NCBI GenBank assembly: GCA_002269645.1
Contig: NIVC01002028.1
Location: 50,886 to 114,885, forward strand
Direction: 5' to 3'
DNA from: Macrostomum lignano
Lineage: Eukaryota
DNA length: 64,000 nt
Shown here: in pieces, positions 6,857-41,585 of the stretch
Layout of the letters: each line of letters opens with the position of its first letter
Numbering within the stretch: the first letter of the stretch is position 1
Notes under the pieces: model-generated
The model's database searches: none
Seen by the model: only the letters and a program-made list of their open reading frames with translations
What the model was told of the DNA's origin: nothing
Translations under genes and position numbers: made by a program

Positions 6857-7664
<808 letters not shown>

Positions 7665-12560: not shown

Positions 12561-12829
12561 CTTCCATTCCCTCTAATAAAAGCCAAGTCTGGAGTACCCT
12601 AAAAAGAAGGTTTCCGTTGCTATGGTACCATGCCTGCTCAACTCTGTAGTCTGACCATTTTTGATATTGAATAATAATCATGATAATTGATATTATACAT
12701 TGGGTGCAATAGCAATTGGGCCGCTTCTCGTTTTGGAACAGCTGAAACTGTCCAGTGAATTCCAATTCCTCACCAGCATTCACTCGCATCAGGCTAACCG
12801 AAATTGATGGACTCCGCAAGCTAGAGCTA

Positions 12830-14234
12830 CGGGCGGGTGTCCAAAAAGTAGTGATACTTTTAACCTTAGCTCTCGTTCTTTAGCTTCCTGTGATTTAAAA
12901 TTTTATGAACTGATAGCGGCAAATCTCTTCTACAGACTGCTTTTTGAATTTTTAAAATTGATACCAGAGAGCAAAAGTTATACCCATGAAAGTAACAGTA
13001 CCTGTACCATAGAGTTACACAAATTATAGGCTGAGCTTCACGAGATCCATGCCGAGTAAGCTTCGATGAATTGTTAATTTCGGCTTGTCCAACCTGTCAG
13101 CGATCTCTCTAATGGTCATTCGAGAGTCAAGAAGATCCTCGTCAAGAAGATCCAGAATGGAGTCCGCCAGTACATCAGGTCGATGAACGTATGGCCGCCC
13201 CATCCGATGCTGATCTGCCAAGTCAGTCCTTCCCTCGCTGAACTGCTCCATCCATCGATAAACTGTCATTTTGCTGACCGCAGAGGATCCGTGCACAAAG
13301 CAAAGTTTTGCGTGAATTTCTGAGGCACATGGCCAGCGCCCCAAAGAGTGAAGATGGTACTTTGCTGAGCAACAACTGAGTGCATATCCATGTGTGTTGT
13401 CGAGTATGGGCAATGGATAAATAATCAGCGGTCCCAGTGCGTGACAACGATTGTCTGGCGAGCGCCGGTAGGCGCGAGCCATAGACAAATCGTTGTCACG
13501 TGCTGCGACCGCTGATTCTTTGCATTGTTTTTCTGTTTGACGATCCTACAGACAATGCATTGTTTGTAGTAATGATTGTTCTGCATAAAATATGCGAATA
13601 ATGATCGTCAAATTGCTACACAATGATAGATTGTGTATATGGTTTTGGAGGTAGACAATGATAAATTTTTCACGAGTGGCGAAGCCACGAGTGACTAAAA
13701 TTTATCATTGTCTATGACAAAACCATATACACAAACACATTGTCTCATGAATGTATTTTTAGAAGCCTAAAATAATGATTCCTAAGCGTGGAATAATGAG
13801 CGTACAGCATGACACAATGAAATCATGAACGAATTGCAAAATGCAAGCTCCTCTGTTTGCAAGTAAAGTAATGAATTTAATGCTTTATTTTTCTGCGCAT
13901 GATTCCGTCCATAGACAAATTTCAGTCAGTCACAGTGAGCATCATTTTGCAATTGGGCTTTGGTATTGCTTAAACAAGACATTTATCGATGCATTCTTAA
14001 TGAATGAGAGCAGAAGTCGACTATTATAAATTTCGATATAGTTTGTGTAACTCTATGGTACAGGTACTGTTATTTTAATGGGTATAACTTTTGTTCTCTA
14101 GTATCAATTTTAAAAATTCAAAAAGCAGTCTGTAGAAGAGATTTTCCGCTATCAGTTCATAAAATTTTAAATCACACGAAGCTATAGAACGAGAGCTACG
14201 GTTAAAAGTATCACTACTTTTTGGACACCCCTCG
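12830..14234 (-). mobile_element. Non-autonomous Tc1/mariner element with long (about 195 bp) TIRs
   Basis: TA flanks at 12828-12829 and 14235-14236; TIRs at about 12830-13023 and 14040-14234 (CGGGCGGGTGTCCAAAAAGTAGTGATAC... / ...GTATCACTACTTTTTGGACACCCCTCG); internal mariner N-terminal remnant. Confidence 0.9.
13030..13330 (-). pseudogene. Mariner transposase N-terminal HTH remnant
   Basis: ...VSKMTVYRWMEQFSEGRTDLADQHRMGRP...DSRMTIREIADRL..., typical of mariner DNA-binding domains; no DDD catalytic domain follows. Confidence 0.85.
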
Positions 14235-14399
14235 TACAGAACGTAGACCATTGTAACAGCTTTAGTTTTTGTTTTGCTGCTACTAAACGCCGGGAAGGTT
14301 GCTGCCTTACAATCGTATGCTTTTTTCCTCTAGTTCAGGTCTCCATACCGCAGCCAAGGCAAGTCAGCTGCCACTCATATACAGCCAAAAAACAAAAAT

Positions 14400-14660
14400 T
14401 CTAGTTCCTGTTCGCAAGTGCTGATGCAGGCTGGAAGACTGCTTTCTACGCAGCAATGCGGCAAATTTTCCGGAGAAAGACAGAAAGGAAACATCAGCAT
14501 TACAGGAAATATACATGTAGCCTTCATCCTTGCTTTTTTTGCAAGCAGTCTGTCGCACACAGCAACTGCGACCTTTTTGTGCAGGCACGATCGAAGCAAT
14601 GGGAAAGTAGCCAAGTACGTGGCGTCTACATGTATACTGCACCAATTTGTTGAATACCAA
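14400..14660 (-). pseudogene. Possible degraded piggyBac C-terminal Cys-rich remnant
   Basis: HVLGYFPIA...KGRSCCVRQTACKKSKDEGYMYISCNADV loosely matches the piggyBac C-terminal pattern; weak. Confidence 0.3.
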
Positions 14661-16245
14661 ACTTTTATTGCATGCGAGCTAAAAGCTGCCGATAAACTAT
14701 GATGCATACTGTCTGGGATTGCAGCACACTATATGTGCGTACGACGTAAATGTTTAAAATTGGCAATAAAATTTTTGCTGCATTTATGCATCATGTGAGG
14801 CGGAAGACCTTTCATTTTAATAGATGGAATGGCAGCGAAGATTTTGTGCTGCTTTGCGCCTATATTTATATATTTACAAATAGCGCGAGATTGAGGGGCC
14901 TATAGCCTATAGGGAGGTGCGAAAAGTTGGCGTGATAAACTTCGCCAACCCCCGGCTTAGCGAGCCGGCTAGTCTGGTGCACCCACCCCACGTCAGCTAG
15001 ACAGAGGTTGGGGGTTTCAAGTGCGGCTGCACTGGTGCTTGCCGGTCGCGTACATACTGCTGGCCGCCACAATAGTATAATTATGCATGGCAATACTGTC
15101 AGGCGTTGCTGTGAAAGAATACAAAGACTTGATACACACAGTTACAATGGTAGCTATAGCTACGGGTAGGATCAGGCCAGTTTATTTTACTATGCATTTT
15201 CCAGGCACATATAGTAAGAGCTAAAAATAGCGTTTGGTAGCTAGCTATCGTATCGTATCTAAACATAATTTTAGTTGATATTTTTGCACAGTGGCTGGCT
15301 ACGTGTATGTACATATGTACATGTACCATGTGCATGAACTACTCACAATGCCCTGGAGTAATTAATACAGGATATTTCCTTGAACATTCGAATCTAAAAA
15401 GTCCCTCTGTGCTATTAGGCTGGTGGTAAAATGTTCGAGCCGTGTGAAATCGATATCTGCAGAATGGACAAGCCTACAACACCCCTCAAATCTCAAAATA
15501 CATGTAGATATATTCAGGTGCAAGGATTTTTCCGGAAAGCACCAACTACAAAAAAGTGAAGAAAAAAGAAAAAAATAATATGGAATTATAGGGCAACAGC
15601 CTGGGCCTCCCTGGCTGCATCACAGATTATTTCGAACTTGAAAATCAAGCATTCTACCAGACTAGCATTAGCTAGTACGATATGTTTAGATAAATCGTAA
15701 AAACGTGGAGAAGGGTAGTGTTTATTGTACGAAAAAATTAAAATATTTATCTCAATAAACGAGAGTGACAAACAGTTTGTTCTAAAAGGGTAAAGGTATT
15801 TAATAGCTTTTCTTTTTGTTTTAATGCATAGCTAATGAAGCAAATAATTGGCGGCTTTTTGACTTCGCTAGAAATAACGGGGTTAAAAATGCGATCGTTT
15901 TCCAATCTGTTAGGCTTTTAAAGTTTTTTTAAATTATAGTATTTGCTGTATTTATGCTATTTATGCAACTGTTTTTGCATCAGTGTATTTTATATTTGTA
16001 TTATATTGCTCTCAACTTCTATAAAGTATTGACTCTCATTAGTATTTTATTTTCTTCATTGACATGCATTTTACTTTTCTTACTTTTCTTAGCTAAAATT
16101 CGTTTTTTTATTATAAAAATATTCTGCAAAAACCAGCAATTTAAGTGACCCTTTATGTTATTAAATGACATGCATACAATTAATCAGCAATGTCTAGTGT
16201 AGTTACGGTTACGATACTTCTTTGATTTGATGGCCAGTAACCTCT

Positions 16246-16408
16246 CATGGGCGAATCCAGTGGAGGGGGGCATGGGGACCCCAGCCGTGGCCAAAAAAGT
16301 GAGCCATACTTTTTTTGCCTGTAACTATGCAATGTATATTTTCCAATATTGGGCTGTAGTGCTCCGTTTAGCTATCCCCTCCCTTGAAACTTTTTGGATC
16401 TGCCCCTG
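16246..16408. mobile_element. Short MITE-like element
   Basis: Imperfect TIRs CATGGGCGAATCCA / TGGATCTGCCCCTG; no TSD recognised. Confidence 0.45.
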
Positions 16409-16796
16409 ACCGCAATGAAATATATGAAGTCCTGCATTAACAAACGATTTTTAACATGAATTTATCACTTAAAATTTAGACGAGTGTTGCTTTTCTGATG
16501 ATACTGTGACCTTATATCAAAATAGAAACTAAATTTGACTAAATCGTTGTATTTTTTTCATACAGGTGTTAATATTTAATCATTTTTGTCTGTGAATTTT
16601 CTTTAAATCTATAGTCTGCCTCTGTAAATGTATCATTATTTAATATTCAAATATTCGGAATTTTTACAAAAAATTTGCTTGCCCCTCCCCATATAAATCA
16701 GCCATATTTCGCACATCGCAACTTGAATATTATTTGTGTTTCAGTATACTGTCCTGTAGCCTCGAACACTAAGCTATTATTCCAAACCCGGTTCCC

Positions 16797-17108
16797 ATGG
16801 CAACCAGATGTGCCGGAATCAGTCCAGCTCGTGAGGCTGACGAGATGGAGAAGGCCATACTGGCCTCTGTGCGGGCCAGCGTGGAGGCTCGCCTTGGCCG
16901 ATCCGTGGACCAGTTCGAACCGGTTCTGATCGCCAGCCAGGTAGTTGCTGGCACCAATTATTTTGCCAAGGTGCGCATTGGCCACTCGGAGTTCGTCCAC
17001 CTGCGCGTGTTCCGGCCGCTGCCGCATACAATGGAGGCCGCCCGACTGAGTGGCCTGCAGACGGGCAAGTCTGCCGATGAGCCAATCGAGTATTTTGACG
17101 CCGAATAG
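16797..17108 (+). CDS. Type 1 cystatin (stefin, cystatin A/B-like), intronless, 103 aa
   Basis: N-terminal Gly, QVVAG motif (SQVVAGTNYFAKV), LRVFRPLP loop, C-terminal IEYF, no signal peptide. Confidence 0.95.
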   Translation: MATRCAGISPAREADEMEKAILASVRASVEARLGRSVDQFEPVLIASQVVAGTNYFAKVRIGHSEFVHLRVFRPLPHTMEAARLSGLQTGKSADEPIEYFDAE

Positions 17109-18598
17109 TGAGAGAGAATCCATGAGTAACAGCTAGTTGTGAACTTCCTATCATTTTTGCTGCGTTTTAAAGTGGGCACTGTCGTAAATCAAGGTGACAG
17201 CCCGCAGTTAGCAAGCAGTTGTGTCGATTCCACACTGATCCCTGAGCACACACGCCCATAGGGTGTACAGTACGAGCTAACCTTGACTTTTTTATCGTAA
17301 GGAAAGTACATGTACACTCTCTGTGTCTTGGGAGTTGGCCCGTCAACCCACCGGACGATTTTCCTGCAAAAGTCCCAAATTAATGCCGCCGCAAACGGAA
17401 TTGAATTCCTGGGCGAGAGTCAGACGCTTCCCTGCTCCTACATGCGAACGGAGGCGTCCAAAATCACAGATGTTTGTTAAAAATTCAGCATTTAAACTCG
17501 AACCGTCATTGATTCCTTCAGGATATCGTTCTTCACCAGGCTTTTCATGCTCCTAGCTTTAGGACCCAAGAGTAGAGCAAAAATTTCAAGATTACCCCAC
17601 TGATCTATTATTACTTTTATTGAGCCAAATCTGCAACAAACTGCAATCTTTGATTAGTGTGACCGAATTCCTCCCGAGAAGTTGTTAGAGTACCTAAACT
17701 GCAATGTGTTTCTTAGTTAAAAGTAGATTTTTACTTATTTTTATATACACGTTTTGACAGTTAATTAGAGCTTTATTTACATTTTCTATACACTTTCTCA
17801 CTGTTTTATGCAATCAGTAGAGTAATGGATTTCCAACCTAGGTCGCTTCTGTTATTAGCTAGCAAGTTGAAAAGCTTTACATAATTTTTTATTTTTAGTA
17901 AGTGTACCAGCTTTTTAAATATTTATTTGTCCTGTCTCTGGCAAACTCAAACTGCTGCTTCGTATTTAATTCAATTTTTCAACATTATTTATCAAACCGT
18001 GGGTAGCTATTATACTTTTTATTCCGACTTTATGCAATGCTTATTTAACGCACGCTTTAAATAATAAATTGTAGTCATTGCACAATGTTTTCAGTTATTT
18101 ATCAAAATGAGAGTAATTTTATACAATGTTCTGGTGTTCTTAAATCTATATCTGTAGAAAAAAACAATTTCGATCAATTTCAAGGATAGCTGAGATTTTG
18201 TCAAATACGTTTTCTTGCGCATCCTTTTTAAAGTCGTGGAGGGTTTTCAGTGGCGAGTATGAGTGCAGTACTATCTTCCTACGTGTTTTTGACCATGGAA
18301 AAACAAAGTTTTCTACTGAATAGCAACAGTTCGACGAATTCGAAACATTAATGAACATTATTGTACATATACTTACACCGCACACAATAGAAACAATTTT
18401 AGATCAATCATTATTCCCCAGTTTTTGAATATTACCATAGAAATTTGGATTCAAAACATTCCTCACAGAAATACAGAAAAGCAATGAAAAACAAATATTC
18501 AATAACTTGATTCTCCCAATAAGGATTAAATTGCTTAAATTGCCACCGGCGCTCGGCAGACAATCGTTGTCACGCACTGGGACTGCTGATTATTTATC

Positions 18599-19051
18599 CA
18601 TTGTCTATGGCCCAAAAGGGGGGTCTATGGAGCAACCAATCTGAGAATCTGGGCGCGCAATGAATCCATTTCACAGTGCTCGTATATCCTTCACGAATAA
18701 CTTCACTGAAACAACGTCTGCAAATAGATGGCATATAAAAAAACTACTGACATTAACACTTTGATTTCAGAGAAACCAATCAAAACAGGCAAAGGCAAAA
18801 CAATGGCATACAATAAAGCCGAGAACAATCGTGTCTCTCACGATGCTTATCCACTGCATCTTGGGCTGTAGTTAAACTTTCGTCACTGCTCTGCTCGCTA
18901 AATTCTTCGTTTGCCATATCCATGTTTGTGTAATGAAATCTGTTATTTTCTATGGTCTAAGGCTTGCACAACTGTGGAAAGGATTAATAGCGCGCCCAAA
19001 TTCTCAAATTGGTTGCTCCATTTAGACCCCCCTTTCGGGCCAAAGACAATG
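18599..19051. mobile_element. MITE with about 60-bp TIRs
   Basis: CATTGTCTATGGCCCAAAAGGGGGGTCTATGGAGCAACCAATCTGAGAATCTGGGCGCGC versus its imperfect inverse ending ...CCCCCTTTCGGGCCAAAGACAATG. Confidence 0.75.
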
Positions 19052-19157
19052 AAAAGCAATTCTTCAATAGATTGATTTTCCCACTAAGGATTAAATTGCT
19101 TGCTCCTAGGCTCAATTGGCTTGAAAAATGCTATAATATTTATTGATATCACAGTGT

Positions 19158-19398
19158 TTTCCATGGTCAAACCAAGACACACGTCACAGTTGTCTATGGT
19201 CAAACCAAGACACACATCACAGTTGTCTATGGTCAAACTAAGACACACATCACAGTTGTCTATGGTCAAACTAAGACACACATCACAGTTGTCTATGGTC
19301 AAACTAAGACACACATCACAGTTGTCTATGGTCAAACTAAGACACACGTCACAGTTGTCTATGGTCAAACTAAGACATACATCACAGTTGTCTATGGT
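19158..19398. repeat. 33-bp minisatellite (about 7 copies), present only in unit 1
   Basis: Unit CACAGTTGTCTATGGTCAAACTAAGACACACAT. Confidence 0.9.
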
Positions 19399-19831
19399 AA
19401 TATAACTCAAAACAGCCAATTAAAGCATGATAGAATATTGTGGATTAATGACCGCGAATAAGTGTGGAATAATGAAAAAAATAGTGTCGAATAATGACAT
19501 CAGTTGCGGACCGGACATAAGTGTTCATACAATGCGCTTACGCTAGGCTCCGAGCTAATAGCAAAACAAATATTTTATAGACTTTTGCCTATTGATTTCC
19601 AGTCTTTTAACTTTTATCTACTTCAAGTAGTGTCTAAAGCTCCTGTAGCAACGAAGAAAGTCGGGAAAATCTGTTTGTTAAAAACGGTTACTGGTTTACA
19701 ATAGACCTTCGGCAGGTAGTGCGGTGTCCGCTGCCAGCTATATACCAACTCCAAATCTAAAATAAAAAATAGAAATTAGTTGTAACGTTTAGTTAATTAC
19801 GTTTTCAAAACTACAAAATCAATAGATTATA

Positions 19832-22051
19832 CTATGACTGCAAACACGGAAGCAAAGCAAAAACTTGCAATTTAATTCTCAGCTCCTGTTGCAGACGATT
19901 GAGAACTGGCTGACGCTGCAGTTTCTCCACGAATATCTGCACCAGGTTGGAGTCGTCGCAGAAGGCGGCGCACACTGCGAGTTCCTGAATGTCGGCGCTT
20001 TCACTCCAAGACACCTCTTGGAACCAGTGTCTAACGCTTACGTCATCGGGTGTCAGCAGAAGTCTCAGACTCTGCAGCAGTGCGTCGAAATTGACATAGA
20101 AGACCGCATTTTGAGTGTAGCTGTCAACGTCAAATGGAAAGTACTCTGCAATGACTTTAGGTAGAAATGGCAGCTCGGGGCGTTGATCAAATCGGAAGCA
20201 GAATTTCCATGCCGAGTCAACGCTAAGCAAATGCTGCCACACGTCTTCCTCTGTTGCTTCAATTGCTAAGTTCTCTGCAGACCAGGTTATTCCTCTGCTC
20301 ACGTTGTGCCGCCTACAGGCACTCAAAACCTTTTGTGCTCCATCTCTATCGTCGAATTTTAGACAGATCATCGCCCTGAGAGCCTCGCGAGCTGTCCGAG
20401 CGCAGTCCGGGAGCCTGTCAATCATTTGCATGAGCGTCTGTCGGGAATCTGGCGATTCAGATATCCGCTGCTGAGATAATTGAAGCAGTGACCATCCCAC
20501 TACATCATAGATCTCGTGATACTCAAGCTCTGGGTTTTCTGTCTGAATGGATTGAAGTCTCAGTTCCGGTAGAATTTGAAAAGGGTGAAAGTAAAATACG
20601 CCCGATTCGTTGACCGGTCGAAGCGTTCTTTGAAATTTCAGCAAGATCTGGGGCAGCTTTTCAATTACATCCCTCAAAACATTCGTAGCACTTTGAATTG
20701 TTTGTGTCATTGCACCGGAATGGCTCGGACCCAAGCCCTTCAAGTACAAACCAGCGTTGCACAGGAAAAAGTGCTCCATGATTCGACCATCCACATTGTC
20801 CACCGTGCAGTTTTGTCCGATGCTGTCAAGAAGCATCTGCAGCGATCGTCTTATTAGACTCACGAAATTCTGCGGTCTCCATTCCTCAGCCGGCGTCTCC
20901 TCCAACATTCTGAAAGTGATTGTCTTTGCGTGATATGCTTTTAGCCCCTCGAAATTGTAGCCGTCTTTGCGGCAAATTACTTTCTTAACCAAGTACTTCA
21001 GAGTGACGAATAGCTGGCCCTGTAACGTGCTGAGACCTCTTAGCAGCAGTTTCTCCAGGAAAGTTGTGCTGACACGAAGCTGCTTTCCCGCTTGTCTAGG
21101 TGGTGCCGCGTGCACCACGTGACAGGGTGACTTGCTGAGCTCGCCTTGAAGTGTATTCAGAACGGACGGAGAAATATTTGAGCTAGAGATTCGATGCGTC
21201 AGCAGCGGAGCGATTGGCGGATAGCAGCAGACGCGGCATGCGTCAACTTCATCTACTGCAGGTCTCAATGGTGTGCCACTTGAGGCCTTTGCCGGATTGG
21301 TTGCTGTTTTAACGATAAAGATTATTAAATGTCTTATAAGCTTTTATGAGATCATGCTTTCATATTGGAACTTTTTAACTGAACAATTGGATAACAAATT
21401 AGATTTAGTGAACTGTTTGGTACAATATGGTACTGGAGCAAAAGCACAGAGAGTCAGTCGCACAAACTGAATTATGTCTACTTGTGTGCTGATTAAAAAA
21501 CTCTGGCCTGGTTATTACTTCCTGTGCATGCGAGTTGGTACGAGTACCATAAGCATTGCTTTCACAGATTGGGCCTACACTGCGGCTTTAAGCGTGAATC
21601 CAGACTGAGCATAGTCCTGTTATATGAAAAGACCTCCGCGATAATGCCCATGACGCCGAGACCCTTATGATATTCCAATTTAATAAACAGCTGCTTACCA
21701 AAGCCCCCAATTCGAATATGACCATCCTTGCAGTCGACCAGCTCCTTTTCTTTTCGATCGCAGCATTGGCAACTACCTCTGATGTGGTAGAGTCGACCCT
21801 GAAACAGCTTCATCACGTCAATGTCAGACTCCGCGTCCGTTCTCCCGTCCGCTTTGGTCAGGCTGTTGCCCCAGCCCTCTGAGTAGCTGCCGACAATATA
21901 GATCCCTGGGAATGAGTCTCTCCTGCTTCGCAAAATTCCCTGCAATGCGTCGGCAACTGCAGCCTGCAAGGCGGCTCTGGCTTTAACAAATCCGGCTTTT
22001 GTAAGCGTCGATTGAAGCAGCAGACTGAGTTCCAATTCACTCGGCATCGAC
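19832..22051 (-). CDS. Mab-21/cGAS-like receptor (cGLR) nucleotidyltransferase, copy 1; exons 22051..21699 and 21303..19832; 606 aa from ATG 22047; intact C-terminus, ankyrin part lost
   Basis: VGSYSEG and ESDIDVM catalytic motifs, third acidic residue in VDEVDAC, LRVSTTFLEKLL, LKAYHAKTITF...EEW, MEHFF. Donor TTTG|GTAAGC (phase 1) joins acceptor AAACAG|CAACC in frame. Confidence 0.85.
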
Positions 22052-22811
22052 CTGAAGAAAATATTTTATTTATTGCATTCTGACCACATACTACTCGTAG
22101 CGTTTCCATTCCCCACTTTCCGTCCCGTTCAGTCTACTAATTTTGCTATTTGATTGTCTCTTTCATTTTATAAAGTTCATTTTTTGCATTAGTTGCTTTA
22201 ATGCGTCGGGCATCGTTTCATTCCTAAACTATAAAAAGGACAATGACGAGGAAGACAAAATTAACCGAGCTAAAAGATGAGAGAATGCATAGAGCGAGAT
22301 AGAAAGACATAATTGAGCTTTTGGAAAAATACAGATTAAAACCAGAGAGAAAAATGTCTAGAAGGAGAGAAATCATCGTACACTAAAAAGAGCACATTGT
22401 GCATAGATCACGCACAAGAGGGACAGAGGTTGGAGTTCTAGAACTGGAAATGTACACTTGCAACAGCAAACAGTGCGTATTCTCGGTCAGTTGGCGAAAT
22501 GATCGTGTACAAAGTAAAATTGCAAATAGAGAACTTTCTTCAACAGCCTAATGAGAATTTTTTTATGTTGCTTTTAGTAGCTCCAGTGCTTCTTCCGCCC
22601 TAGTACGAGCGTAATGCCCACGCATGCATGTTGACGGCAGCAATTACACTAAGCTGAAGCCGCGTAGCCAGCGAAACAACTAAATACTTCAACAAACCGC
22701 TTTGAGAAGCACTTCTAAATGCCATTTGGATTCGAAAATTAGGGGGCTCTATTTCATTTTATGTACAACGTCGCTCTATTTTAATATAAAAACTCATATT
22801 CGAACTCTTAC

Positions 22812-23263
22812 TCTGACTCTGACAAAGCCGCACGATCCTGATGAGTAAGTTGATGCTTAGCCTTTTCTGTCTCAGACTCAAGAAACGGTGATTCATATTG
22901 TGTCTGAATAGTTTGTTCCAGCAAGGCAGCAACTCGGTGATGTCCATTGACGCTTGCAATTAGAAGGGGAGTCTCACCAGTAACAGTTCTTGCTTCAACG
23001 TCAGCATGCGCCCTGACGAGGGACAACACCACGCCATAGTGACCGTTCTGCGACGCGATGTAGATTGGCGTGCAGCCTTCGGAGTCTTTGAGCTTGAGCG
23101 TTTATGAGTGAGTCAAATAGCTCATGGTAACCATTCTGTGACGCAATAAAGAGCGGAGACAGCCCCGTGTCAGTTTGCAGATTAACGCTTGCTTGCGCTT
23201 TTAGGAGCAAACTAAACACAGCATGAGGGCCTAGTTGCGACGCAATGTAAATGGGCGAGCCGC
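22812..23263 (-). pseudogene. 3' remnant of the ankyrin-repeat exon (copy 1)
   Basis: Matches the last about 3 ankyrin repeats of 53976-55870; 11-bp deletion (CATTGACGTCA) causes a frameshift; homology stops abruptly at 23263. Confidence 0.9.
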
Positions 23264-23430
23264 ATGTGCATTTCCGTTTGTTTTGCTTGTATAATGAAAG
23301 TTTTGATCATGATGCGAGACTTCTGAGAATATTTTACTCTATTCGCATCAAATGCATTGTTTGCATTTTTCGATCATGTTATTTAAAGCCAGAATTCACT
23401 TCACCAACACGAATTGTTATTCATTAGTTT
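23264..23430 (+). repeat. About 170-200-bp repeat, inverted partner at 32206-32403
   Basis: TGCATTTCCGTTTGTTTTG...CACCAACACGAATTGTTATTCATTAGTTT is the reverse complement of 32206-32403 apart from an indel of about 37 bp. Confidence 0.85.
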
Positions 23431-23954
23431 ACACACCAGCTCATGATTCTACTGAGTCATTTTGTGACTAGCTGGATCCATGCCTAAAATGAGCCTTCGA
23501 TTTTAGCTTTGCTGCTAAATAAACTTTCTGTACGTCGAGTAAGTCAGACTGATGTTTTGCACTGATGTTAAAAAAATTAATGTAAATTTTATTGCTTGCT
23601 GCAATACAAATGATTGGCCTTAATAAATGAGTACTTGAAATGCTGAGTAAATTGCTCAGCTTGAATGAATCAAAGCTGCGGGTCTCTAGACCGCATATAC
23701 CAATGCTAATGAATTGAATAATTTGGAACTCAAAACTCAAAAAAGATTTTAAGCTTTGTCGGTATTAATTTGGTCAGGTACAAAATTAATTCCAGAGCAG
23801 TTAATATTATATATTTCAGCCAACAATAAAGTACATAGTTAGCAACTACGAATATTCAGATTGAGTCCCAGAGTTGAAATCCGGCAATCATGGGCGGTGT
23901 CCGGTCCGTGTCCGAGGTCAGTGGGTGCAGCGGAGTACCTGCCTGCAAGTCTAC

Positions 23955-24185
23955 TTACTTGCCAATGAGCCTCAACATAGTTCTGGCAACCCTCCCCCAC
24001 CTGATCCGGAATTTCTTCTGCAGCTCCGCGGCCTTCTCATCCGTCATCTCCGGCTCGTCCATGTCGGCCAGAGCCTCCAGCGCCGCCATCGCTTTGGCGT
24101 CCTCCTCCGACATCTCCTGGCTGCTGGGTCTGGCGGCGGCCAGAGCTGCGCACAGCAGGAGTCCGAGAACGAACTGCCACCTCAT
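23955..24185 (-). CDS. Secreted peptide precursor (76 aa): signal peptide, acidic propiece, KK, FRIRWGRVARTMLRLI, GK; candidate amidated antimicrobial/bioactive peptide, copy 1
   Basis: Hydrophobic N-terminus MRWQFVLGLLLCAALAAA; 12 D/E in the propiece; dibasic site; C-terminal G-K; GC-rich coding-like sequence; upstream TATA box; AATAAA on the minus strand near 23590. Confidence 0.8.
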   Translation of the reverse strand: MRWQFVLGLLLCAALAAARPSSQEMSEEDAKAMAALEALADMDEPEMTDEKAAELQKKFRIRWGRVARTMLRLIGK

Positions 24186-24282
24186 GATGAACTTGTAGCT
24201 GTAGCCTGATGAAGCTGAGAAGCTGGAGTAGAGTTATCTAGCCTTGGCTGCTTGGTTGTCCGCTGGGCATCCAAGGACCCTG

Positions 24283-24290
24283 TATTTATA
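24283..24290 (-). promoter_or_regulatory. TATA box of peptide gene copy 1
   Basis: TATAAATA on the minus strand about 100 nt upstream of the ATG. Confidence 0.65.
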
Positions 24291-24946
24291 GTGTAGAAAT
24301 CAGCACGTTTTTCCGGTCGCTGGAACGCGGGGGGTCCGCTGTGTCCCCTTCACGTGCTCCGGTCTTAAAAAAATTCCTTCAATGGTTAAACCCTAACCTC
24401 GACCTAGCCATCTATTGGCTTTATTGTCCATTCTCCACTCATTGCCAAGGCCCTGAGGGAATTGAACTTGAATGCTATTGGCCTTATTCTTTGACAGTCC
24501 ATTCGAGAGTAGCTCAGCTTTGCATTGAATTTGTTGCCTGCATGCAATGTATTATAGATAGCACTTATTGAGCTTCTCAAGTAGTTTCAGGACTATAGCT
24601 AAAATTGCGCTCGTTTGAGTCGCAACATGCCCAGTGGTGCTAGCTGGTCTGGGGAGTTATGAGCAGCAGGCTCTTTTGTTCTCAACTGAAATTGCTATAA
24701 GAGTTCGCAGTAGAGTTCAATGCTACGTTTGGACTTGGGCGTGTTTTCAAACTGTCTACTTAAAAACTTATTTACAACTTGCAGGGTCGCTTGGTTTATA
24801 GATTAACTGTGTGAGCTGAAACCAGTTTGAACCTGTGTTATCTATTTTTTATCGCGTTTGTATGCACGTTTTAATTATACTCTTCTGTTCCGAAGATTTA
24901 AACCACATATATGTACCAATGAGTGCAGTTTTTTTTAAATGGCCAT

Positions 24947-25100
24947 ATATACTCAGATACCATATGCTCAGATATTATATGCTCAGATATCATATGCTCA
25001 GATACCATATGCTCAGATATTATATGCTCAGATATCATATGCTCAGATACCATATGCTCAGATACCATATGCTCAGATACCATATGCTCAGATACCATAT
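24947..25100. repeat. 15-bp satellite (GATACCATATGCTCA)n, left part before the LTR insertion
   Basis: About 10 units, interrupted at ATAT by the LTR element. Confidence 0.95.
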
Positions 25101-25638
25101 TGTAGTGTGAGCATCTTTGCGTTTATTTTGTTGTAAATTGACTGCATTAGTTTCTCTCCGTTGAACGGTCGGTTCGGCAGGGCTCTCGTTTGAGAGTAGG
25201 TTCTGGTTTAGGCCAGGGGTTAGGAGTCTTCTCCGTGGTCCTGTGTTCGGTGCCTCTTTCTTCTTCAAGCTAAGATCCGCTTGTCAGTGCGTATATAATC
25301 ATTATTTATTAACCGTTATTATCGTTTTGTCAACTCTAGTTATCGCGTCGTTTGTCTAAATCTTGTAACTCAGCTAATCAAATTAAACCGTCTAGCCAAT
25401 TATCAGTTGTATCACATAGGATTATCACTCTCTAAATCTTTCGGTTTGTGTTTCCTCGTGTTCTTTATTTTCTTGTACTGTACCTGCGGCTATTGGAGAA
25501 GACTGGTAGAACTCGCCGACCGGCGATAGGCGATTAGGATTAATAGCTTTAAAATCTCCGAACGCTCCAAGTAGGTTTGTCTAGGGCCTAAATAATTGCT
25601 CACCGTGCATGCTATTATCTAATTGCCTATTTATCACA
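25101..25638 (+). repeat. 5' LTR (538 bp)
   Basis: TGTAGTGTGAGC...TATTTATCACA; no difference from 28867-29404 noticed by eye. Confidence 0.95.
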
Positions 25639-25640
25639 AG

Positions 25641-25658
25641 TGGAGCCCCTGGGAATCC
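25641..25658 (+). promoter_or_regulatory. Putative primer-binding site
   Basis: TGGAGCCCCTGGGAATCC starts 2 nt after the LTR; its complement resembles a tRNA 3' end (CCA plus T-arm). The tRNA is not assigned. Confidence 0.55.
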
Positions 25659-26163
25659 AATAGTTAGCAGGCGGCAGTTTATTGGTAGGCGCTCTAAGTG
25701 AGCAAGCTGAGACTAAAATTCAACGAGTCTGTTCCAGGCTCGTAGCGGCTATTTCGTCAACCACGCAGTGTGCAGCAATTCCGCATTAGGTGTGGTTTTG
25801 CGGTTGGCCAGTTACCCCAAAATACTGAATAGGATTTAGGAGTGGGAAAAATAAAATTGACTTTCTAAACTCAAATTAGCACTTTAATAGAAACTTGCGT
25901 GTGAAAGTAGATTTTGTTTACAGTTGAAAATTTTATTAGTGTTTATTAGCATAGTCTGCGAGTGCGCGCACTAGAGAGTACATTGGTTGAATTTGTCTCA
26001 GTGTACATTCAGTTTTTCTTATCAGTTATTGCCAGTGCGAGCGAGGCGACCGATTCCGCTCATTAGATAAAATAGAAAGCTAGATCATTGAAATTGTTAT
26101 AGCTTTACAAGTTGTACTTTCTGAAGTTGCAGTAATAGAAATTCCAATTGGTTGACACTTAGC

Positions 26164-27396
26164 ATGGCGCAAGACGGAGAAAATAGTCAGGAATCGAAGT
26201 CAGTTGAGATTAGGAACGAAGGCGAAGTAGATGAGGCCGAACATTTGAGAACAGTAGTGAGAGAACTGCAGGATCGCATAAGAAGAATGGAAACCGAAAA
26301 TCCTGAACCTAGAGTGATTTTGAAGTCGCATAACAGCGTAGCAAAGCCCAAGCCATACCGACTTGGCTCAGATTTCGAATTGTTTCTAAGAATCTTCAAC
26401 AACTACTGTCAAGGCAACAGTATAGACGAATCGGCTAAAGTGTATCAACTATTGTCGCTCCTAGACGAAGACGCCTACAAGGTTTACATTAACTTAGGCC
26501 TAGCGAGCACCGAATCATTTGAAAGCATCGAAAAGACTTTAAAGGACAAATTTAAGCCCGTAGGACAGAAGGAAGAAGCGAAGCTAGAGCTGATGAACCG
26601 CAAGCAGAAGGAAGACGAATCATTAGAAGAATTTTACGACGCATTAGTTGAATTAGTTAGGAAAGCAGGACTAGAGAGTCAGGCTAGAGAGCGAGTTTCT
26701 GAACGATTTGAAGCCGGCATAGCAAATTATAAAGTCAGGCGCGCAGTTATTGCCTATCGTAGAACCCATGAATCGAAGTATCAGACTCAAGATTTATTGA
26801 CTGCAGCTAAGAATGAGGAGATCCTCGAAGAACTCGCAAACCCAGGTAGCCAAAAGAATAGAAGGAAGCAGGAGGGCTCAAATACTTTGACAGCTCAAGT
26901 AGAAAAAGAGCAGAAAAAGCCAGCACCCAGCGCGGACCAAGGCCACCAGTCATTTGGACCTCAGTTTGCTTCCCCGAGCAATTATCCTTCGCAGTACCAA
27001 CCGTACCAGAATTATCAGCCTCAGTTCGACTACAGGCAATGGCAACCTAGGTTTGCCCATAGACAAATGAACCCAAGCTATAGGCCACAGGCACCAGTGC
27101 AGCCTCAGAATAGCTTCCGGCCACAGCATCATATGAGCAGCTACTCAAGACCCTATAATAGGCAGTCTTCGCCTTTTGTCAGGCCCGCCATGACACGCCC
27201 GCCACGCTTTGGTCACGAGGCCGGAGGGGCCAATGACAGGTTCAAACCTTCGGGGGCGAACGCGCCAAATGCGAGAAAGGCCTGTTATGAGTGCGGCGAA
27301 GAAACTCACCTGGCTAGAGACTGCCCAGTTAGACGAAATTCTTTAAACTACCGACGGGGCGGCACCAAGGGAGGGCCAACCGCCCCCAGCCACTAA
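26164..27396 (+). CDS. gag: Retrotransposon Gag (capsid-like domain, Q/P-rich linker, CCHC zinc knuckle), 410 aa from ATG 26164
   Basis: ORF inside the LTRs; capsid-like segment QKEDESLEEFYDALVELVRKA; knuckle CYECGEETHLARDC (CX2CX4HX4C). Confidence 0.93.
   Translation: MAQDGENSQESKSVEIRNEGEVDEAEHLRTVVRELQDRIRRMETENPEPRVILKSHNSVAKPKPYRLGSDFELFLRIFNNYCQGNSIDESAKVYQLLSLLDEDAYKVYINLGLASTESFESIEKTLKDKFKPVGQKEEAKLELMNRKQKEDESLEEFYDALVELVRKAGLESQARERVSERFEAGIANYKVRRAVIAYRRTHESKYQTQDLLTAAKNEEILEELANPGSQKNRRKQEGSNTLTAQVEKEQKKPAPSADQGHQSFGPQFASPSNYPSQYQPYQNYQPQFDYRQWQPRFAHRQMNPSYRPQAPVQPQNSFRPQHHMSSYSRPYNRQSSPFVRPAMTRPPRFGHEAGGANDRFKPSGANAPNARKACYECGEETHLARDCPVRRNSLNYRRGGTKGGPTAPSH
27342..27386 (+). 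promoter_or_regulatory. -1 programmed ribosomal frameshift signal
   Basis: Slippery heptamer T TTA AAC (27342-27348) in the correct gag phase; 7-nt spacer TACCGAC; 7-bp GC stem GGGGCGG (27356-27362) pairing with CCGCCCC (27380-27386). Confidence 0.8.
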
Positions 27397-27947
27397 ACCG
27401 ATTCACTCCCAATAGAAGAGCTGCAGCAGTAGAGGACCAGCAAGACAGCTCAGTCAATGTAGAATATGGCAACTTAGTTTGGTACAATTATTACAGAGGC
27501 TACGGATTTCTGCGAGATAACGATAATAGAGATATATTCTTTCATGTGACTAATACTAATATAGCAACTGATTACGAAATTATGCATTTTCTGCGCCAGA
27601 GGGCGACAGTAAAATTTATTCGCACTAACGATACTACTCATAGTAGGAAACAGAGAGCGGTCAATGTTAAAATTTGCTCAAGCGAGGAACGCAGATTAGC
27701 AGAAATTGACAAACAGAAGTCAGCGAGCTTAGCTAGACAGTCAGAGGCGTTGACAGAAGAATTAGAGAAACGAAGCGAAGCTGCAGCAGCTCAGAGAAGT
27801 GCATTAAACAGCATAGACTTGCGACTTAGTGAAGTAGAAGGAAAGAAAGCTTCAGCAGACGAATCTAAGGTAGTAAAAGAATTATCAGATCTAAGAACCG
27901 AATTGAAGGACTTGCGCCAATGCTTGGCTGGAAAGGAAGTTCACTAG
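27348..27947 (+). CDS. -1-frame ORF (199 aa): cold-shock domain plus coiled coil; predicted Gag-CSD fusion of about 594 aa
   Basis: Frame is open from just after TAG 27330-27332 to 27947. It translates ...YGNLVWYNYYRGYGFLRDNDNRDIFFHVTNTNIATDYEIMHFLRQRATVKFIRTNDTTHSRKQRAVNVK..., with CSD RNP1-like RGYGFL, RNP2-like IFFH and terminal AVNV, then a heptad-rich K/E/L segment. Confidence 0.78.
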   Translation, partial: LPTGRHQGRANRPQPLNRFTPNRRAAAVEDQQDSSVNVEYGNLVWYNYYRGYGFLRDNDNRDIFFHVTNTNIATDYEIMHFLRQRATVKFIRTNDTTHSRKQRAVNVKICSSEERRLAEIDKQKSASLARQSEALTEELEKRSEAAAAQRSALNSIDLRLSEVEGKKASADESKVVKELSDLRTELKDLRQCLAGKEVH

Positions 27948-28850
27948 AGCCGGCGTCCTGGACACGACGTTAAACTGCGACCGCTAGGGAAGACGGAATG
28001 ACATTAACCAGTGCTTGTCCTGGGCACGACAGAAAACTGCAGCCATTGGGCGGTGAATTTCGCCACGGGGATTGGTCCTGGGCAAGACCATAAACTGCAG
28101 CCAATGGGCGATAGTTTTCGCGCGCTGAGTGTTAGTCCGCCACGGGAGCGTGGGTGGAACTTTATTATCGTCGAGGCATCCAATTAGAGATAAGCGTCGT
28201 GGGAAATTGCGATAAGAATTCCGCTGTGGAGACAGCGAGGGTCGTAGCGCCCACCCTACCTTTTTAGGAGGGGGGAGGTGCGGATAGTTAAATCAGCGAG
28301 TAATAAAATTTTGCCAGCCGATAAGGTTCATCTTGGCACGTCGGAAGTGTGTAATTTGATTAACTTGTGTAAAATGCGTCAACGCGTTATTTGTTCTTGG
28401 TGATGGGTAGCATGCGTTTTGCTTTAAGTTTTCGATTGTAGAAAGTCGTGCCATAGTTTGCGTAAACGTTGCGTTCCGTCGCGATTTGTTTCGATTTATT
28501 TATTGATTTGCTTGTGTTTGTCGTGCCGCGTATTGAATAGTAGCTTTGCTTATGTATTTGATTGCGTTTTGCCGTGTCATAGAATTGTATTTGTGTTCTT
28601 GTTTGCGTTTCATTGTCGCGTCATGTTTTGCATAGTGAATTACGTTGTGTTCCCATTTGCGTTTTTTTTTCCCAGTTGCTATAGTTATACCCTTGTTATA
28701 TTGCTCTTGTTCTTGAATTTTGAAATTTGCTTTCCGCGAATGCGTTCCGTGCTGTACTGTACCAACTTGCTTACTAGGAGTAGTATGTCGTGAATATGAC
28801 GCAAATTTTCATTTGTTGTAAAAGTTTTTTCTTCTTTTGTACTCTATTTC

Positions 28851-28866
28851 TTTTAGGAGGGGGGAG
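28851..28866 (+). promoter_or_regulatory. Polypurine tract with upstream T-run
   Basis: TTTTAGGAGGGGGGAG immediately precedes the TG of the 3' LTR. Confidence 0.9.
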
Positions 28867-29404
28867 TGTAGTGTGAGCATCTTTGCGTTTATTTTGTTGT
28901 AAATTGACTGCATTAGTTTCTCTCCGTTGAACGGTCGGTTCGGCAGGGCTCTCGTTTGAGAGTAGGTTCTGGTTTAGGCCAGGGGTTAGGAGTCTTCTCC
29001 GTGGTCCTGTGTTCGGTGCCTCTTTCTTCTTCAAGCTAAGATCCGCTTGTCAGTGCGTATATAATCATTATTTATTAACCGTTATTATCGTTTTGTCAAC
29101 TCTAGTTATCGCGTCGTTTGTCTAAATCTTGTAACTCAGCTAATCAAATTAAACCGTCTAGCCAATTATCAGTTGTATCACATAGGATTATCACTCTCTA
29201 AATCTTTCGGTTTGTGTTTCCTCGTGTTCTTTATTTTCTTGTACTGTACCTGCGGCTATTGGAGAAGACTGGTAGAACTCGCCGACCGGCGATAGGCGAT
29301 TAGGATTAATAGCTTTAAAATCTCCGAACGCTCCAAGTAGGTTTGTCTAGGGCCTAAATAATTGCTCACCGTGCATGCTATTATCTAATTGCCTATTTAT
29401 CACA
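28867..29404 (+). repeat. 3' LTR (538 bp)
   Basis: Copy of 25101-25638 followed by the TSD ATAT. Confidence 0.95.
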
Positions 29405-31678
29405 ATATGCTCAGATATCATATGCTCAGATACCATATGCTCAGATACCATATGCTCAGATACCATATGCTCAGATACCATATGCTCAGATACCATATGC
29501 TCAGATTCCATATGCTCAGATACCATATGCTCAGATACCATATGCTCAGATACCATATGCTCAGATACCATATGCTCAGATACCATATGCTCAGATACCA
29601 TATGCTCAGATATTATATGCTCAGATATTATATGCTCAGATACCATATGCTCAGATACCATATGCTCAGATACCATATACTCAGATATTATATGCTCAGA
29701 TATTATATGCTCAGATACCATATGCTCAGATACCATATGCTCAGATATTATATGCTCAGATACCATATGCTCAGATATTATATGCTCAGATACCATATGC
29801 TCAGATACCATATGCTCAGATACCATATGCTCAGATATTATATGCTCAGATATTATATGCTCAGATACCATATGCTCAGATACCATATGCTCAGATACCA
29901 TATACTCAGATATTATATGCTCAGATATTATATGCTCAGATGCCATATGCTCAGATGCCATATGCTCAGATACCATATGCTCAGATACCATATGCTCAGA
30001 TACCATATGCTCAGATATTATATGCTCAGATACCATATGCTCAGATGCCATATGCTCAGATACCATATACTCAGATATTATATGCTCAGATACCATATGC
30101 TCAGATATTATATGCTCAGATACCATATGCTCAGATACCATATACTCAGATACCATATGCTCAGATACCATATGCTCAGATACCATATGCTCAGATATTA
30201 TATGCTCAGATACCATATGCTCAGATACCATATGCTCAGATACCATATGCTCAGATACCATATGCTCAGATATTATATGCTCAGATACCATATGCTCAGA
30301 TACCATATACTCAGATATTATATGCTCAGATATTATATGCTCAGATACCATATACTCAGATACCATATGCTCAGATATTATATGCTCAGATACCATATGC
30401 TCAGATACCATATACTCAGATACCATATACTCAGATATTATATGCTCAGATATTATATGCTCAGATATTATATGCTCAGATACCATATGCTCAGATATTA
30501 TATGCTCAGATACCATATACTCAGATACCATATGCTCAGATACCATATGCTCAGATACCATATGCTCAGATATTATATGCTCAGATACCATATGCTCAGA
30601 TACCATATACTCAGATACCATATACTCAGATACCATATGCTCAGATATTATATGCTCAGATACCATATGCTCAGATACCATATGCTCAGATACCATATAC
30701 TCAGATACCATATGCTCAGATATTATATGCTCAGATACCATATGCTCAGATACCATATGCTCAGATATTATATGCTCAGATACCATATGCTCAGATATTA
30801 TATGCTCAGATACCATATGCTCAGATACCATATGCTCAGATATTATATGCTCAGATACCATATGCTCAGATATTATATGCTCAGATACCATATGCTCAGA
30901 TATTATATGCTCAGATACCATATGCTCAGATATTATATGCTCAGATACCATATGCTCAGATATTATATGCTCAGATACCATATGCTCAGATATTATATGC
31001 TCAGATACCATATACTCAGATACCATATGCTCAGATATTATATGCTCAGATACCATATACTCAGATACCATTTGCTCAGATATTATATGCTCAGATACCA
31101 TATGCTCAGATACCATATGCTCAGATATTATATGCTCAGATACCATATGCTCAGATATTATATGCTCAGATACCATATGCTCAGATATTATATGCTCAGA
31201 TACCATATGCTCAGATACCATATGCTCAGATACCATATACTCAGATACCATATGCTCAGATACCATATGCTCAGATACCATATGCTCAGATACCATATGC
31301 TCAGATACCATATGCTCAGATATTATATGCTCAGATACCATATGCTCAGATATTATATGCTCAGATACCATATGCTCAGATATTATATGCTCAGATACCA
31401 TATGCTCAGATACCATATGCTCAGATACCATATGCTCAGATATTATATGCTCAGATACCATATGCTCAGATACCATATGCTCAGATACCATATGCTCAGA
31501 TACCATATGCTCAGATACCATATGCTCAGATACCATATGCTCAGATACCATATGCTCAGATACCATATGCTCAGATACCATATGCTCAGATACCATATGC
31601 TCAGATACCATATGCTCAGATACCATATGCTCAGATACCAAATGCTTAGATATCACATGCTCGGATACCATATGCTCA
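29405..31678. repeat. 15-bp satellite (GATACCATATGCTCA)n, unit 1 main array
   Basis: Period of 15 bp with variants GATATT-, -ATACTC-, GATGCC-; source of the artefactual 570-810 aa ORFs. Confidence 0.98.
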
Positions 31679-32205
31679 GGGAGAAAAGAGATTTGCTCAG
31701 ACGCCATCAGATACCCTGAGAGGAAATTTCCCCGTGACAATTTTTCTGCACCGGAGCGGAGCATCGCAGGCACACGAAATTAAAAAACACGGTCAAATCT
31801 TTTGTTGCGCACCTTTTCATCAATAGTCACGTCGAGATATTCAAAAATTCTGCCAGAAATTCGGATTTTCGCGCGCTAGTGTATTCAGTACACCCCTGTG
31901 CGCCAATCAGCACTGCGTCTCAACCTGGCCTCGCCGAGCCTCCAAGTTTCATCAGCACGTCGACCATGTGTCTGCATCAGCTCTGACTTTGTTGATCACT
32001 GGCCATAACTCAGGCAGAGCTTCTGGAGCTTCAACACTGGCACCAGGTGACAAAGTTGCTACCATGTTATGTAGTTATTTAAGTTTTTTATTAAAGTCCC
32101 TTTTTGGTAGCTCTACTGACAATTCTACTTTTTGAATGAGAAAAAATTGAGCAATAAATTAATTATACATGTCTCTCTCCGATATCAAATTTTGAAACCG
32201 ATATC

Positions 32206-41417: not shown

Positions 41418-41585
41418 ATGTGCATTTCCGTTTGTTTTGCTTGTATAATGAAAGTTTTGATCATGATGCGAGACTTCTGAGAATATTTTACTCTATTCGC
41501 ATCAAATGCATTGTTTGCATTTTTCGATCATGTTATTTAAAGCCAGAATTCACTTCACCAACACGAATTGTTATTCATTAGTTTA
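41418..41585 (+). repeat. Inverted-repeat left arm, unit 2 (partner 47222-47419)
   Basis: Duplicate of 23264-23430. Confidence 0.85.

Follow-up and report, generated by a model that had tools for sequence, protein, structure and literature searches.

The precursors of frog-skin dermaseptins and temporins are composed of a signal peptide, an acidic spacer, a dibasic site, and a short cationic peptide with a Gly or Gly-Lys end, and they form a multigene family in which the preproregion is conserved and the mature peptide is hypervariable. The arminins of Hydra are lineage-restricted proteins with a signal peptide, an anionic N-terminal region, and a cationic amidated C-terminal peptide of demonstrated activity, and an anionic propiece that balances a cationic tail is a recurrent feature of antimicrobial precursors. 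A gene with this layout is present in two identical copies in a 64,000-nucleotide stretch of the flatworm Macrostomum lignano (NCBI GenBank assembly GCA_002269645.1, contig NIVC01002028.1, positions 50,886 to 114,885 of the forward strand), referred to here as the window. On sequence evidence, it is best read as one member of a secreted prepropeptide family of more than 20 genes restricted to Macrostomum, with a conserved signal and propiece, a hypervariable Arg-rich tail, and, in most members, a terminal glycine.

The Macrostomum family shares with the frog-skin precursors the order of parts, the conserved preproregion, the hypervariable product, and the multigene organization, and differs from them in using KK and not KR and in being Arg-rich and not Lys-rich. 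The Pfam model of the frog-skin signal and propiece (Brevenin/FSAP) gave no match for the window protein or five paralogs, and the likeness would be convergent, since there is no sequence relationship and the lineage is that of a flatworm. With the arminins, the family has in common its lineage restriction and the combination of a signal, an anionic region, and a cationic tail, but no homology; many of the Macrostomum products are shorter (6-18 residues) and combine Arg with Trp, Tyr, Val, and Ile, and activity has been demonstrated for arminin and is only predicted for the Macrostomum family. Indolicidin, tritrpticin, Bac5/Bac7, and PR-39 are mammalian peptides derived from cathelicidin precursors. 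Together with designed (hydrophobic-Arg)n amides, they are alike to the Macrostomum products in composition and patterning, a comparison by composition only, and the patterns behind it are RIRIRWRR, strands of the FVRVRVRL-amide kind, and the PRVRL repeats of the family protein P0029. The Macrostomum precursor differs from theirs in being of a signal, anionic-propiece, and KK type of 64-95 residues.

Flatworms are established producers of amidated peptides. Their I/L-amide genes (GFVRIamide and RLamide of schistosomes) show strong conservation from one schistosome species to another, and the predicted Macrostomum products resemble these peptides in being short and amidated, with a hydrophobic end, an FVR-I/L-like core, and dibasic processing; the Macrostomum family differs in its hypervariability, its expansion, and its high positive charge, and no member was found outside Macrostomum. 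Among peptides described from flatworms, mesco-1/2/3 of Mesocestoides corti have 39-41 residues, mesco-2 deriving from a 141-residue protein, and a 2023 survey found the antimicrobial peptide repertoire of flatworms undescribed and the classical lophotrochozoan groups absent. Arg-rich secreted flatworm candidates are also listed by Irvine et al. 2023; of these, Mlig024774g1/g2 and Mlig001477g4 belong to the family described here, the difference being that the entries were labelled 'Same genome' or 'Ungrouped', were dropped without discussion, and were not seen as one family. Family members are thus already public as hypothetical proteins and, for a few, in a supplementary list. In the literature searched, no account was found of these genes as one family, of the logic of their processing, of the promoter, of the clusters, or of the pattern of a conserved preproregion with a variable mature part, and full-text searches returned no papers matching nine Mlig identifiers or the peptide strings. 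A match of Mlig024774.g6 in an M. lignano expression supplement was rejected, since this PRPF19 gene shares the transcription unit and is otherwise unrelated.

The gene lies on the minus strand, which an earlier sequence-only reading of this DNA had not stated, and has the following parts (positions are those of the window; the slash in splice-site sequences marks the exon boundary):

24185 to 23955, minus strand: coding sequence of copy 1, with ATG at 24185, TAA at 23957-23955, and 76 codons.
24132 to 24185, minus strand: predicted signal peptide, residues 1-18, MRWQFVLGLLLCAALAAA, with a predicted cut after Ala18.
24018 to 24131, minus strand: anionic propiece, residues 19-56 (38 residues), with 12 Asp/Glu, 3 Lys/Arg, and an isoelectric point of about 4.05.
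24012 to 24017, minus strand: predicted dibasic processing site KK, residues 57-58.
23964 to 24011, minus strand: predicted mature peptide FRIRWGRVARTMLRLI, residues 59-74.
23955 to 23963, minus strand: Gly75 (putative amide donor), Lys76, and the TAA stop, which overlaps the donor-like AA/GTAAGT.
23810 to 23815, minus strand: AATATA, a putative variant of the poly(A) signal lying 140 nt beyond the TAA, its use being presumed.
42339 to 42109, minus strand: coding sequence of copy 2, 231 nt, base-for-base the same as copy 1, with the mature peptide at 42165-42118.

The precursor anatomy proposed by the sequence-only reading, comprising a signal, a propiece with 12 acidic residues, KK, a 16-mer, GK, and a stop, is present in full in the window sequence, in the order MRWQFVLGLLLCAALAAA, RPSSQEMSEEDAKAMAALEALADMDEPEMTDEKAAELQ, KK, FRIRWGRVARTMLRLI, GK, and stop. 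The second copy that it placed at 42109-42339 is indeed a base-for-base match, lying within a block of perfect identity of 1,978 bp (23013-24990, repeated at +18,154), and a TATA box precedes each copy as described. The composition given for the 16-mer at 23964-24011 also holds, with five Arg, no acidic residue, and one Trp, and 9 of its 16 residues are hydrophobic (56%). Its charge is +5 from Arg and would reach +6 if the N-terminus is free and the C-terminus amidated, and its hydrophobic moment at 100 degrees is 0.61 (p = 0.11 against shuffled sequences). The signal peptide has n-, h-, and c-regions that appear typical, its N-terminus, M[RK]WQxxLGLLLC, is near-invariant in all family members, and paralogs with almost the same N-terminus were positive in SignalP 4.1 according to Irvine et al. 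2023. Lys58 is nearly invariant in the family; ahead of the tail, most members have KK or KKK, and two have EK or LK. An AlphaFold2 model suggests a helix over residues 52-75 with a block-mean predicted local distance difference test score of about 61-74, the model as a whole being of low confidence (mean 62.7). AATATA or AATAAA lies 120-211 nt past the stop in six of the eight family 3' flanks read. The window contains 63 open reading frames (ORFs) of at least 90 codons in its 64 kb, so a lone 76-codon ORF would be unremarkable; the peptide ORF stands above chance because it has homologues with expectation (E) values down to 2e-35, its preproregion is under purifying selection, and its promoter 11-mer is found only at the two copies. 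A whole-family tblastn search of the window returned no peptide gene copies beyond these two.

The first phmmer search found three M. lignano hypothetical proteins with E values down to 2e-35, which have the signal and propiece in common and carry differing Arg/Trp-rich tails that end in GK or GKR. P0001 is 88-91% identical to the window protein, the two tools used differing in the value (E = 2e-35), with significant similarity across signal and propiece, and the closest family models, both annotated as hypothetical proteins, are BOX15_Mlig025003g1 and Mlig030644g1. Among 1.84 billion cluster representatives searched with a profile, only nine matched, all from M. lignano or one Logan contig; 23 clusters at 90% identity came from a further profile search, and every match with a named source is from M. 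lignano. The paralogs with variable mature regions that the sequence-only reading proposed to look for are therefore there in number, more than 20 relatives in which the preproregion is conserved and the tail hypervariable. Its description of the gene as unannotated stands within the window and falls for the relatives, since in Mlig_3_7 the one of 88-91% identity is annotated as a hypothetical protein, and so are more than 20 further ones. The BOX15_Mlig models come from a genome-guided transcriptome built on RNA-seq, spliced-leader, and poly(A)-end data, from which low-expression novel transcripts were removed. No Pfam family was significant for the window protein or for any of five paralogs, and a profile search of the PDB gave no related solved structure; a borderline Lock_Gag1 match of P0040 was set aside, as it sits on an internal duplication.

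Like the window gene, the family models of M. lignano are single-exon coding sequences with a signal, an acidic propiece, K-K, a cationic tail, Gly with or without a basic residue, and a stop. The precursors have 64-95 residues and the tails 6-30, with net charges up to +11 or more. An ending in G, GK, GKR, or KKG right before the stop is shared by 21 of 27 distinct tails, which speaks indirectly for the predicted amidation, and the exceptions include two broken models. The predicted products include FRIRIRWGRVARNVLRLL-G, WLLRRIRIRWRRVLRVASRVYRIYRYLPI-G, WRIKSACKIFRRLLHLARKCYAKK-G, and the PRVRL-repeat peptide of P0029, as well as the short FVRVRVRL-G, IFRVRVRI-G, WLRVRARVRI-G, FVRVHVRF-G, and FIHIHF-G; the longest tails are Arg/Trp/Tyr-rich and reach 30 residues, and one form consists of Pro/Arg repeats. 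Some loci hold several members. Over 27 kb of locus L009 (Mlig_3_7 contig NIVC01001664.1, 10001-37330), five intact copies and two partial ones form a tandem cluster on both strands, and L006 has two copies 2.8 kb apart. Locus L001 (contig NIVC01000346.1 of Mlig_3_7), which is syntenic with window positions 6611-25016 at 91-95% identity, has one copy of the gene against two in the window. The P0003 locus in L009 has a 1-bp deletion within the signal peptide. The most divergent member, WFSRWFRITYRRRGGERRYLRSYFRL-G (P0035), occurs at L007 and L008; genes with PARP domains flank L007, and one downstream neighbour at L008 has a faint PARP match. L005, a Logan contig of 929 bp (SRR31628392) that may come from another Macrostomum species, encodes a Pro/Arg-repeat tail without the terminal Gly. 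Several models were rejected as members: P0039 (139 residues), which spans 27 kb and joins two L009 copies with no canonical GT-AG junction by eye, is a likely assembly chimera, and P0028 (634 residues), P0030/P0038, and P0047 are fused or broken.

The rate of change differs sharply along the precursor, as measured by Nei-Gojobori counts of the proportions of nonsynonymous (pN) and synonymous (pS) differences among seven paralogs. Between the window gene and its closest relative, the preproregion has a pN of 0.03 and a pS of 0.13, and among closer pairs pN is 0.02-0.08, pS is 0.10-0.26, and pN/pS is 0.1-0.35. With pN well under pS, purifying selection on the preproregion is indicated. The mature region has a pN of 0.3-0.5 and a pN/pS of about 0.5-1, with 2.0 in one pair; between the window and L002, its pN of 0.35 is higher than the divergence on the 5' side (0.07) and on the 3' side (0.18) and than the pS of the preproregion (0.20). 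The mature region thus appears to evolve much faster than the rest, which is compatible with diversifying selection without proving it. Simple decay is argued against by the tails, which retain an open frame, an Arg and hydrophobic composition, and the terminal Gly.

A compact promoter is common to the family, and in the window it comprises the following elements:

24304 to 24316, minus strand: promoter element CCGGAAAAACGTG of copy 1, 13 nt upstream of the TATA box.
24283 to 24290, minus strand: TATA box TATAAATA of copy 1, 105 nt upstream of the ATG.
42437 to 42470, minus strand: promoter of copy 2, with CCGGAAAAACGTG at 42470-42458 and TATAAATA at 42444-42437.
24200 to 24225, minus strand: conserved block CAGCTTCTCAGCTTCATCAGGCTACA of the 5' untranslated region (UTR), 26 nt, invariant in a DNA alignment of the window, L001, L002, L003, and L004.

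In the reading order of the minus strand, CACGTG comes before CCGGAAAAACGTG, and the position of the TATA box would put the length of the 5'UTR at about 75 nt. CGGAAA[A/C]ACGTG stands 13 nt upstream of [T/C]ATAAAT in nine out of ten different promoters read in the family, and the variant GGAAACACGAG is found in the most divergent promoter, that of L007. Within the window, the promoter 11-mer occurs only at 24304 and 42458, each time before a gene copy, about 0.03 occurrences being expected by chance. At L005, the promoter element is doubled, as GGAAAAATGTG and GGAAAAACGTG.

The end of the ORF deserves attention because the sequence-only reading had named splicing at AA/GTAAGT, across the stop, as an event that would give a different C-terminus. 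The stop context is GGC-AAG-TAA-GT in the window and L001, GGC-AAG-TAG-GT in L002, GGC-AAG-TAG-GC in two L009 copies, AAG-CGC-TGA-AAC in a GKR member, GGT-TAA-AT in L006, and GGC-TGA-AC in L007. The GT of the donor is missing in several members, in which Gly (with or without a basic residue) and the stop are kept instead, and an AAG codon for Lys followed by any stop codon automatically yields GT[AG][AG]. The in situ primers for the transcript RNA815_1838.3 (501 nt) match the paralog at L009:10001 exactly, at 9977 and 10320-10340, and their spacing on the genome, 364 nt, equals the stated probe length, so the paralog mRNA runs colinear with its gene between the 5'UTR and a point 73 nt past the stop. 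With a donor that is not conserved and a paralog transcript that is unspliced through the stop, the proposed splicing finds no support.

The proposed route from gene to product can be traced step by step. The TATA promoter and the family element CGGAAAAACGTG would drive an mRNA of about 470 nt, and signal peptidase would remove the 18-residue signal peptide in the endoplasmic reticulum (ER). The anionic propiece (net charge about -9) may neutralize the cationic tail in transport, until a proprotein or prohormone convertase-type enzyme cleaves after KK and a carboxypeptidase E-type enzyme trims the C-terminal Lys. Peptidylglycine alpha-amidating (PHM/PAL) enzymes would then convert Gly75 to a C-terminal amide, and the predicted product is FRIRWGRVARTMLRLI-NH2, with a monoisotopic mass of 2042.23 Da and a net charge of +6. 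The leading reading, held at about even odds, is that the gene encodes the precursor of a lineage-specific, membrane-active host-defence peptide of the antimicrobial type, one of a diversifying Arg-rich arsenal. Architecture, composition, expansion, clustering, the hypervariable mature region, and lineage restriction all fit such a role. In file S5 of Irvine et al. 2023, eleven antimicrobial peptide predictors gave Mlig024774g1/g2 100% and Mlig001477g4 82%, these entries having followed positive SignalP and ProP calls.

Several observations weigh against host defence. The hydrophobic moments barely exceed shuffled controls (p = 0.03-0.11), the alignment of the mature region is uncertain because it is short and contains indels, and a mature pN/pS near 1 over 16-30 codons cannot separate diversifying from relaxed selection. 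The closest paralogs, Mlig025003 and Mlig030644, were not found among the antimicrobial-like entries listed in the available portion of the table, and the literature searched holds no antimicrobial-activity, peptidomic, or induction data for any member. Some short members resemble flatworm I/L-amide neuropeptides, and expression of the two window copies is itself something we infer. For the paralog transcript RNA815_1838.3, positional RNA-seq gave 93, 94, 49, and 176 reads in head-only fragments, fragments with testes added, fragments with ovaries added, and whole worms, respectively (class 0,0,0), the fractional counts suggesting that reads are shared among paralogs. Its expression is low and body-wide, neither brain-enriched nor gonad-restricted, and reveals no epithelial or immune site. 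Its in situ pattern, the only one for the family, is given as 'gonads' (from Ramm et al. 2019, in the table of Brand et al. 2020) and likewise indicates no epithelial or immune site. These expression data fit a reproductive role at least as well as immunity.

The 'gonads' pattern and the lack of positional bias in RNA-seq, both from one paralog, keep reproductive and neuropeptide roles in contention. A reproductive peptide acting on gametes, eggs, or the partner, by way of fertilization, the physiology of sperm or eggs, or sexual conflict, with its mature region turned over by sexual selection, is a minor but substantial possibility, and it would overlap with host defence if the peptide gave antimicrobial protection to the germ line or eggs. 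RNA815_1838.3 was picked from a screen for socially sensitive transcripts, reproduction-related genes are reported to evolve fast in Macrostomum, and the 364-nt probe spans the conserved preproregion, so that it probably cross-hybridizes with the window-type subfamily; head-only fragments, which lack gonads, nevertheless give counts like those of whole worms, so expression is not gonad-restricted, and an Arg-rich amphipathic amide with an anionic propiece is a standard antimicrobial layout. A neuropeptide or hormone precursor, belonging to an enlarged branch of the I/L-amide or RF-amide type of flatworm peptides and signalling through a receptor, would account for the dibasic site and C-terminal Gly, a classic signature, and for predicted ends such as VRVRL-amide, VRVRI-amide, and HVRF-amide, which resemble GFVRIamide and RLamide. 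It is considered unlikely: conservation is reversed, with the spacer kept and the product varying in sequence and length (6-30 residues), the more than 20 paralogs form tandem clusters, no homologue from other flatworms appeared among the 1.84 billion cluster representatives, net charges run up to +11 or more, and the transcript is not enriched in the brain-bearing head fragment. Another secreted effector, whether a cytolytic toxin or deterrent aimed at prey or predators, or one constituent of what glands secrete (mucus, rhabdites, or adhesive release, for instance), is rated marginally lower still. Membrane-lytic peptides of venoms and skin have the same chemistry, the RNA signal is body-wide with head and tail included, and the family is lineage-restricted. 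M. lignano grazes diatoms, however, a diet for which a prey toxin is not obviously needed, gland-specific expression is not reported, and no member occurs under the searched identifiers in the portion available of the Arbore 2015 tail/prostate screen tables, the sole screen searched.

Alternatives that dispute the gene structure itself involve the genes that follow the peptide gene on the minus strand:

22811 to 23276, minus strand: remnant of an ankyrin-repeat (ANK) exon, residues 483-641 of a 641-residue ORF, with a frameshift near 23091-23098 and a phase-2 donor GA/GTAAGA.
19835 to 22051, minus strand: Mab-21/cGAS-like exons of a 5'-truncated ANK-Mab-21 copy, with the acceptor TTTTCTTCAG/G at 22051.

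The ORF could be the first exon of a longer gene, ending at 23959 and spliced at AA/GTAAGT to the Mab-21 exon at 22051 to give a Mab-21/cGAS-like chimera with a signal peptide, the 76-codon frame then being a mere by-product, which is regarded as very improbable. Donor and acceptor are both in phase 2 and the joined frame stays open for 163 more codons, but a phase match has a 1-in-3 chance. The adjacent ANK exon truly uses a stop-overlapping donor, GA/GTAAGA, and Mab-21 units 1 and 2 have no 5' end and promoter of their own; against this, AAG and a stop create a donor-like sequence in any case, several paralog contexts are no donors, the paralog transcript is unspliced through the stop, L001 retains an intact gene ending in GK and stop without Mab-21, and no M. 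lignano Mab-21 relative among the sequences read starts with the peptide exon. The placement of the peptide gene before the 5'-truncated ANK-Mab-21 copy could also allow read-through into a secreted or ER-lumenal cGAS-like protein with a cationic propeptide, a nascent chimeric immune gene formed by exon capture, to which just as little credence is given. Scarcely credible at all is that the ORF is non-functional or spurious, being a decaying duplicate or the shadow of an antisense ORF (23890-24198, plus strand, 102 residues) that is the real feature. Long open antisense frames do overlap the peptide ORF, the P0003 locus has its 1-bp deletion, and two copies in the family are truncated; both window copies are nevertheless intact, and each has a promoter, a TATA box, and a poly(A)-like signal, the preproregion is under purifying selection in the sense frame, and the orientation of the paralog transcript is that of the sense frame. 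The antisense ORFs were rejected as genes, as they have 76-135 codons and unconserved ends and are expected opposite GC-rich, stop-poor coding sequence.

The sequence-only reading had taken the position of the peptide gene beside cGLR copies as a hint of an immune cluster, and the surroundings make that hint weak. The neighbours are 5'-truncated ANK-Mab-21 copies. The ANK-Mab-21 fusion gene is tandemly triplicated, with a copy at 51007-55897 (minus strand) and shortened copies at 19835-23276 and 37996-41430 (both minus strand); the full 641-residue ankyrin exon is found only in the third unit (55897-53972), and units 1 and 2 keep residues 483-641, frameshifted. The natural ANK-to-Mab-21 intron (22805-22815 to 22051, minus strand) is in phase 2, and its donor GA/GTAAGA overlaps an in-frame TAA. 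Relatives in M. lignano, of which the genome has many, include 871-residue fusion proteins of ankyrin repeats and Mab-21 with their own N-terminus. The neighbour scores 23.2 bits against Pfam Mab-21_C, just below the cut-off of 24.1, and its single sequence gave no match in the PDB; the Mab-21 family profile matches cGAS chains weakly (E about 4e-5 over about 62 residues), and a nucleotidyltransferase-like motif, GSYSEGWG...ESDIDV, can be discerned in the Mab-21-like ORF. L001 has the same ANK remnant after its peptide gene and lacks the Mab-21 part, so the peptide gene is independent of Mab-21 and their linkage is not a conserved one. No Mab-21 was found in the fetched flanks of L002-L009, up to 10 kb where the contig allows, and the other family loci adjoin unrelated bestrophin, CRAL-TRIO, mitochondrial carrier, or PARP genes.

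The two copies of the peptide gene lie in a tandem segmental duplication of 5.6 kb (19460-25100 and 37661-43254, 98.3% identical), in which nearly all differences between units fall below 20,250; a third unit (50672-54438) ends before the peptide gene, and satellites of 15 bp and 32 bp lie between the units. The 15-bp satellite ATATGCTCAGATACC occupies 24947-25100, 29405-31679, and 43101-46695 and begins about 760 bp upstream of each gene copy. It is also found upstream of the P0002 paralog loci in Mlig_3_7 (L002, L003), and the peptide gene and this satellite therefore seem to duplicate together. The 32-bp satellite AGAGGCAGATTCAAGGACACTGAGGGGAGCGG, purine-rich with a strong GC/AT skew, fills 32461-37593 (5.1 kb) and 47477-50604 (3.1 kb) and is present in L002 too. 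A retrotransposon gag ORF with a zinc knuckle (26152-27396, plus strand) lies amid two blocks of the 15-bp satellite, in a stretch (25100-29405) that belongs to unit 1 only and is found in neither unit 2 nor L001. The long ORFs of the window match a DEG/ENaC channel, ankyrin repeats, Mab-21_C, the retrotransposon gag, and an SLC13 transporter; exons of the amiloride-sensitive DEG/ENaC channel lie at 8410-11026 (plus strand) and those of the SLC13-type sodium:sulfate/citrate symporter at 57587-59818 (minus strand). Other arrays are (AACT)n of 0.8 kb at 6858-7664, a 10-bp repeat at 56865-57270, a second 32-bp repeat at 61530-62218, and a 9-bp repeat at 62668-64000 that runs past the window end.

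Gene-encoded antimicrobial peptides of flatworms are essentially undescribed, and in this family a free-living flatworm model may have its first endogenous antimicrobial peptides, a good and testable candidate that is purely predicted and whose lone expression hint points elsewhere. Protocols for transgenesis and RNA interference (RNAi) exist for M. lignano, making regulation, cell type, and function directly testable. If active, the family would be a complete, taxonomically restricted set of effectors with more than 20 paralogs, a defined processing logic, and a compact common promoter, and it would provide natural (hydrophobic-Arg)n-amide peptides down to 6-10 residues. If reproductive, it would offer a compact example of fast-diversifying reproductive peptides in a hermaphrodite.

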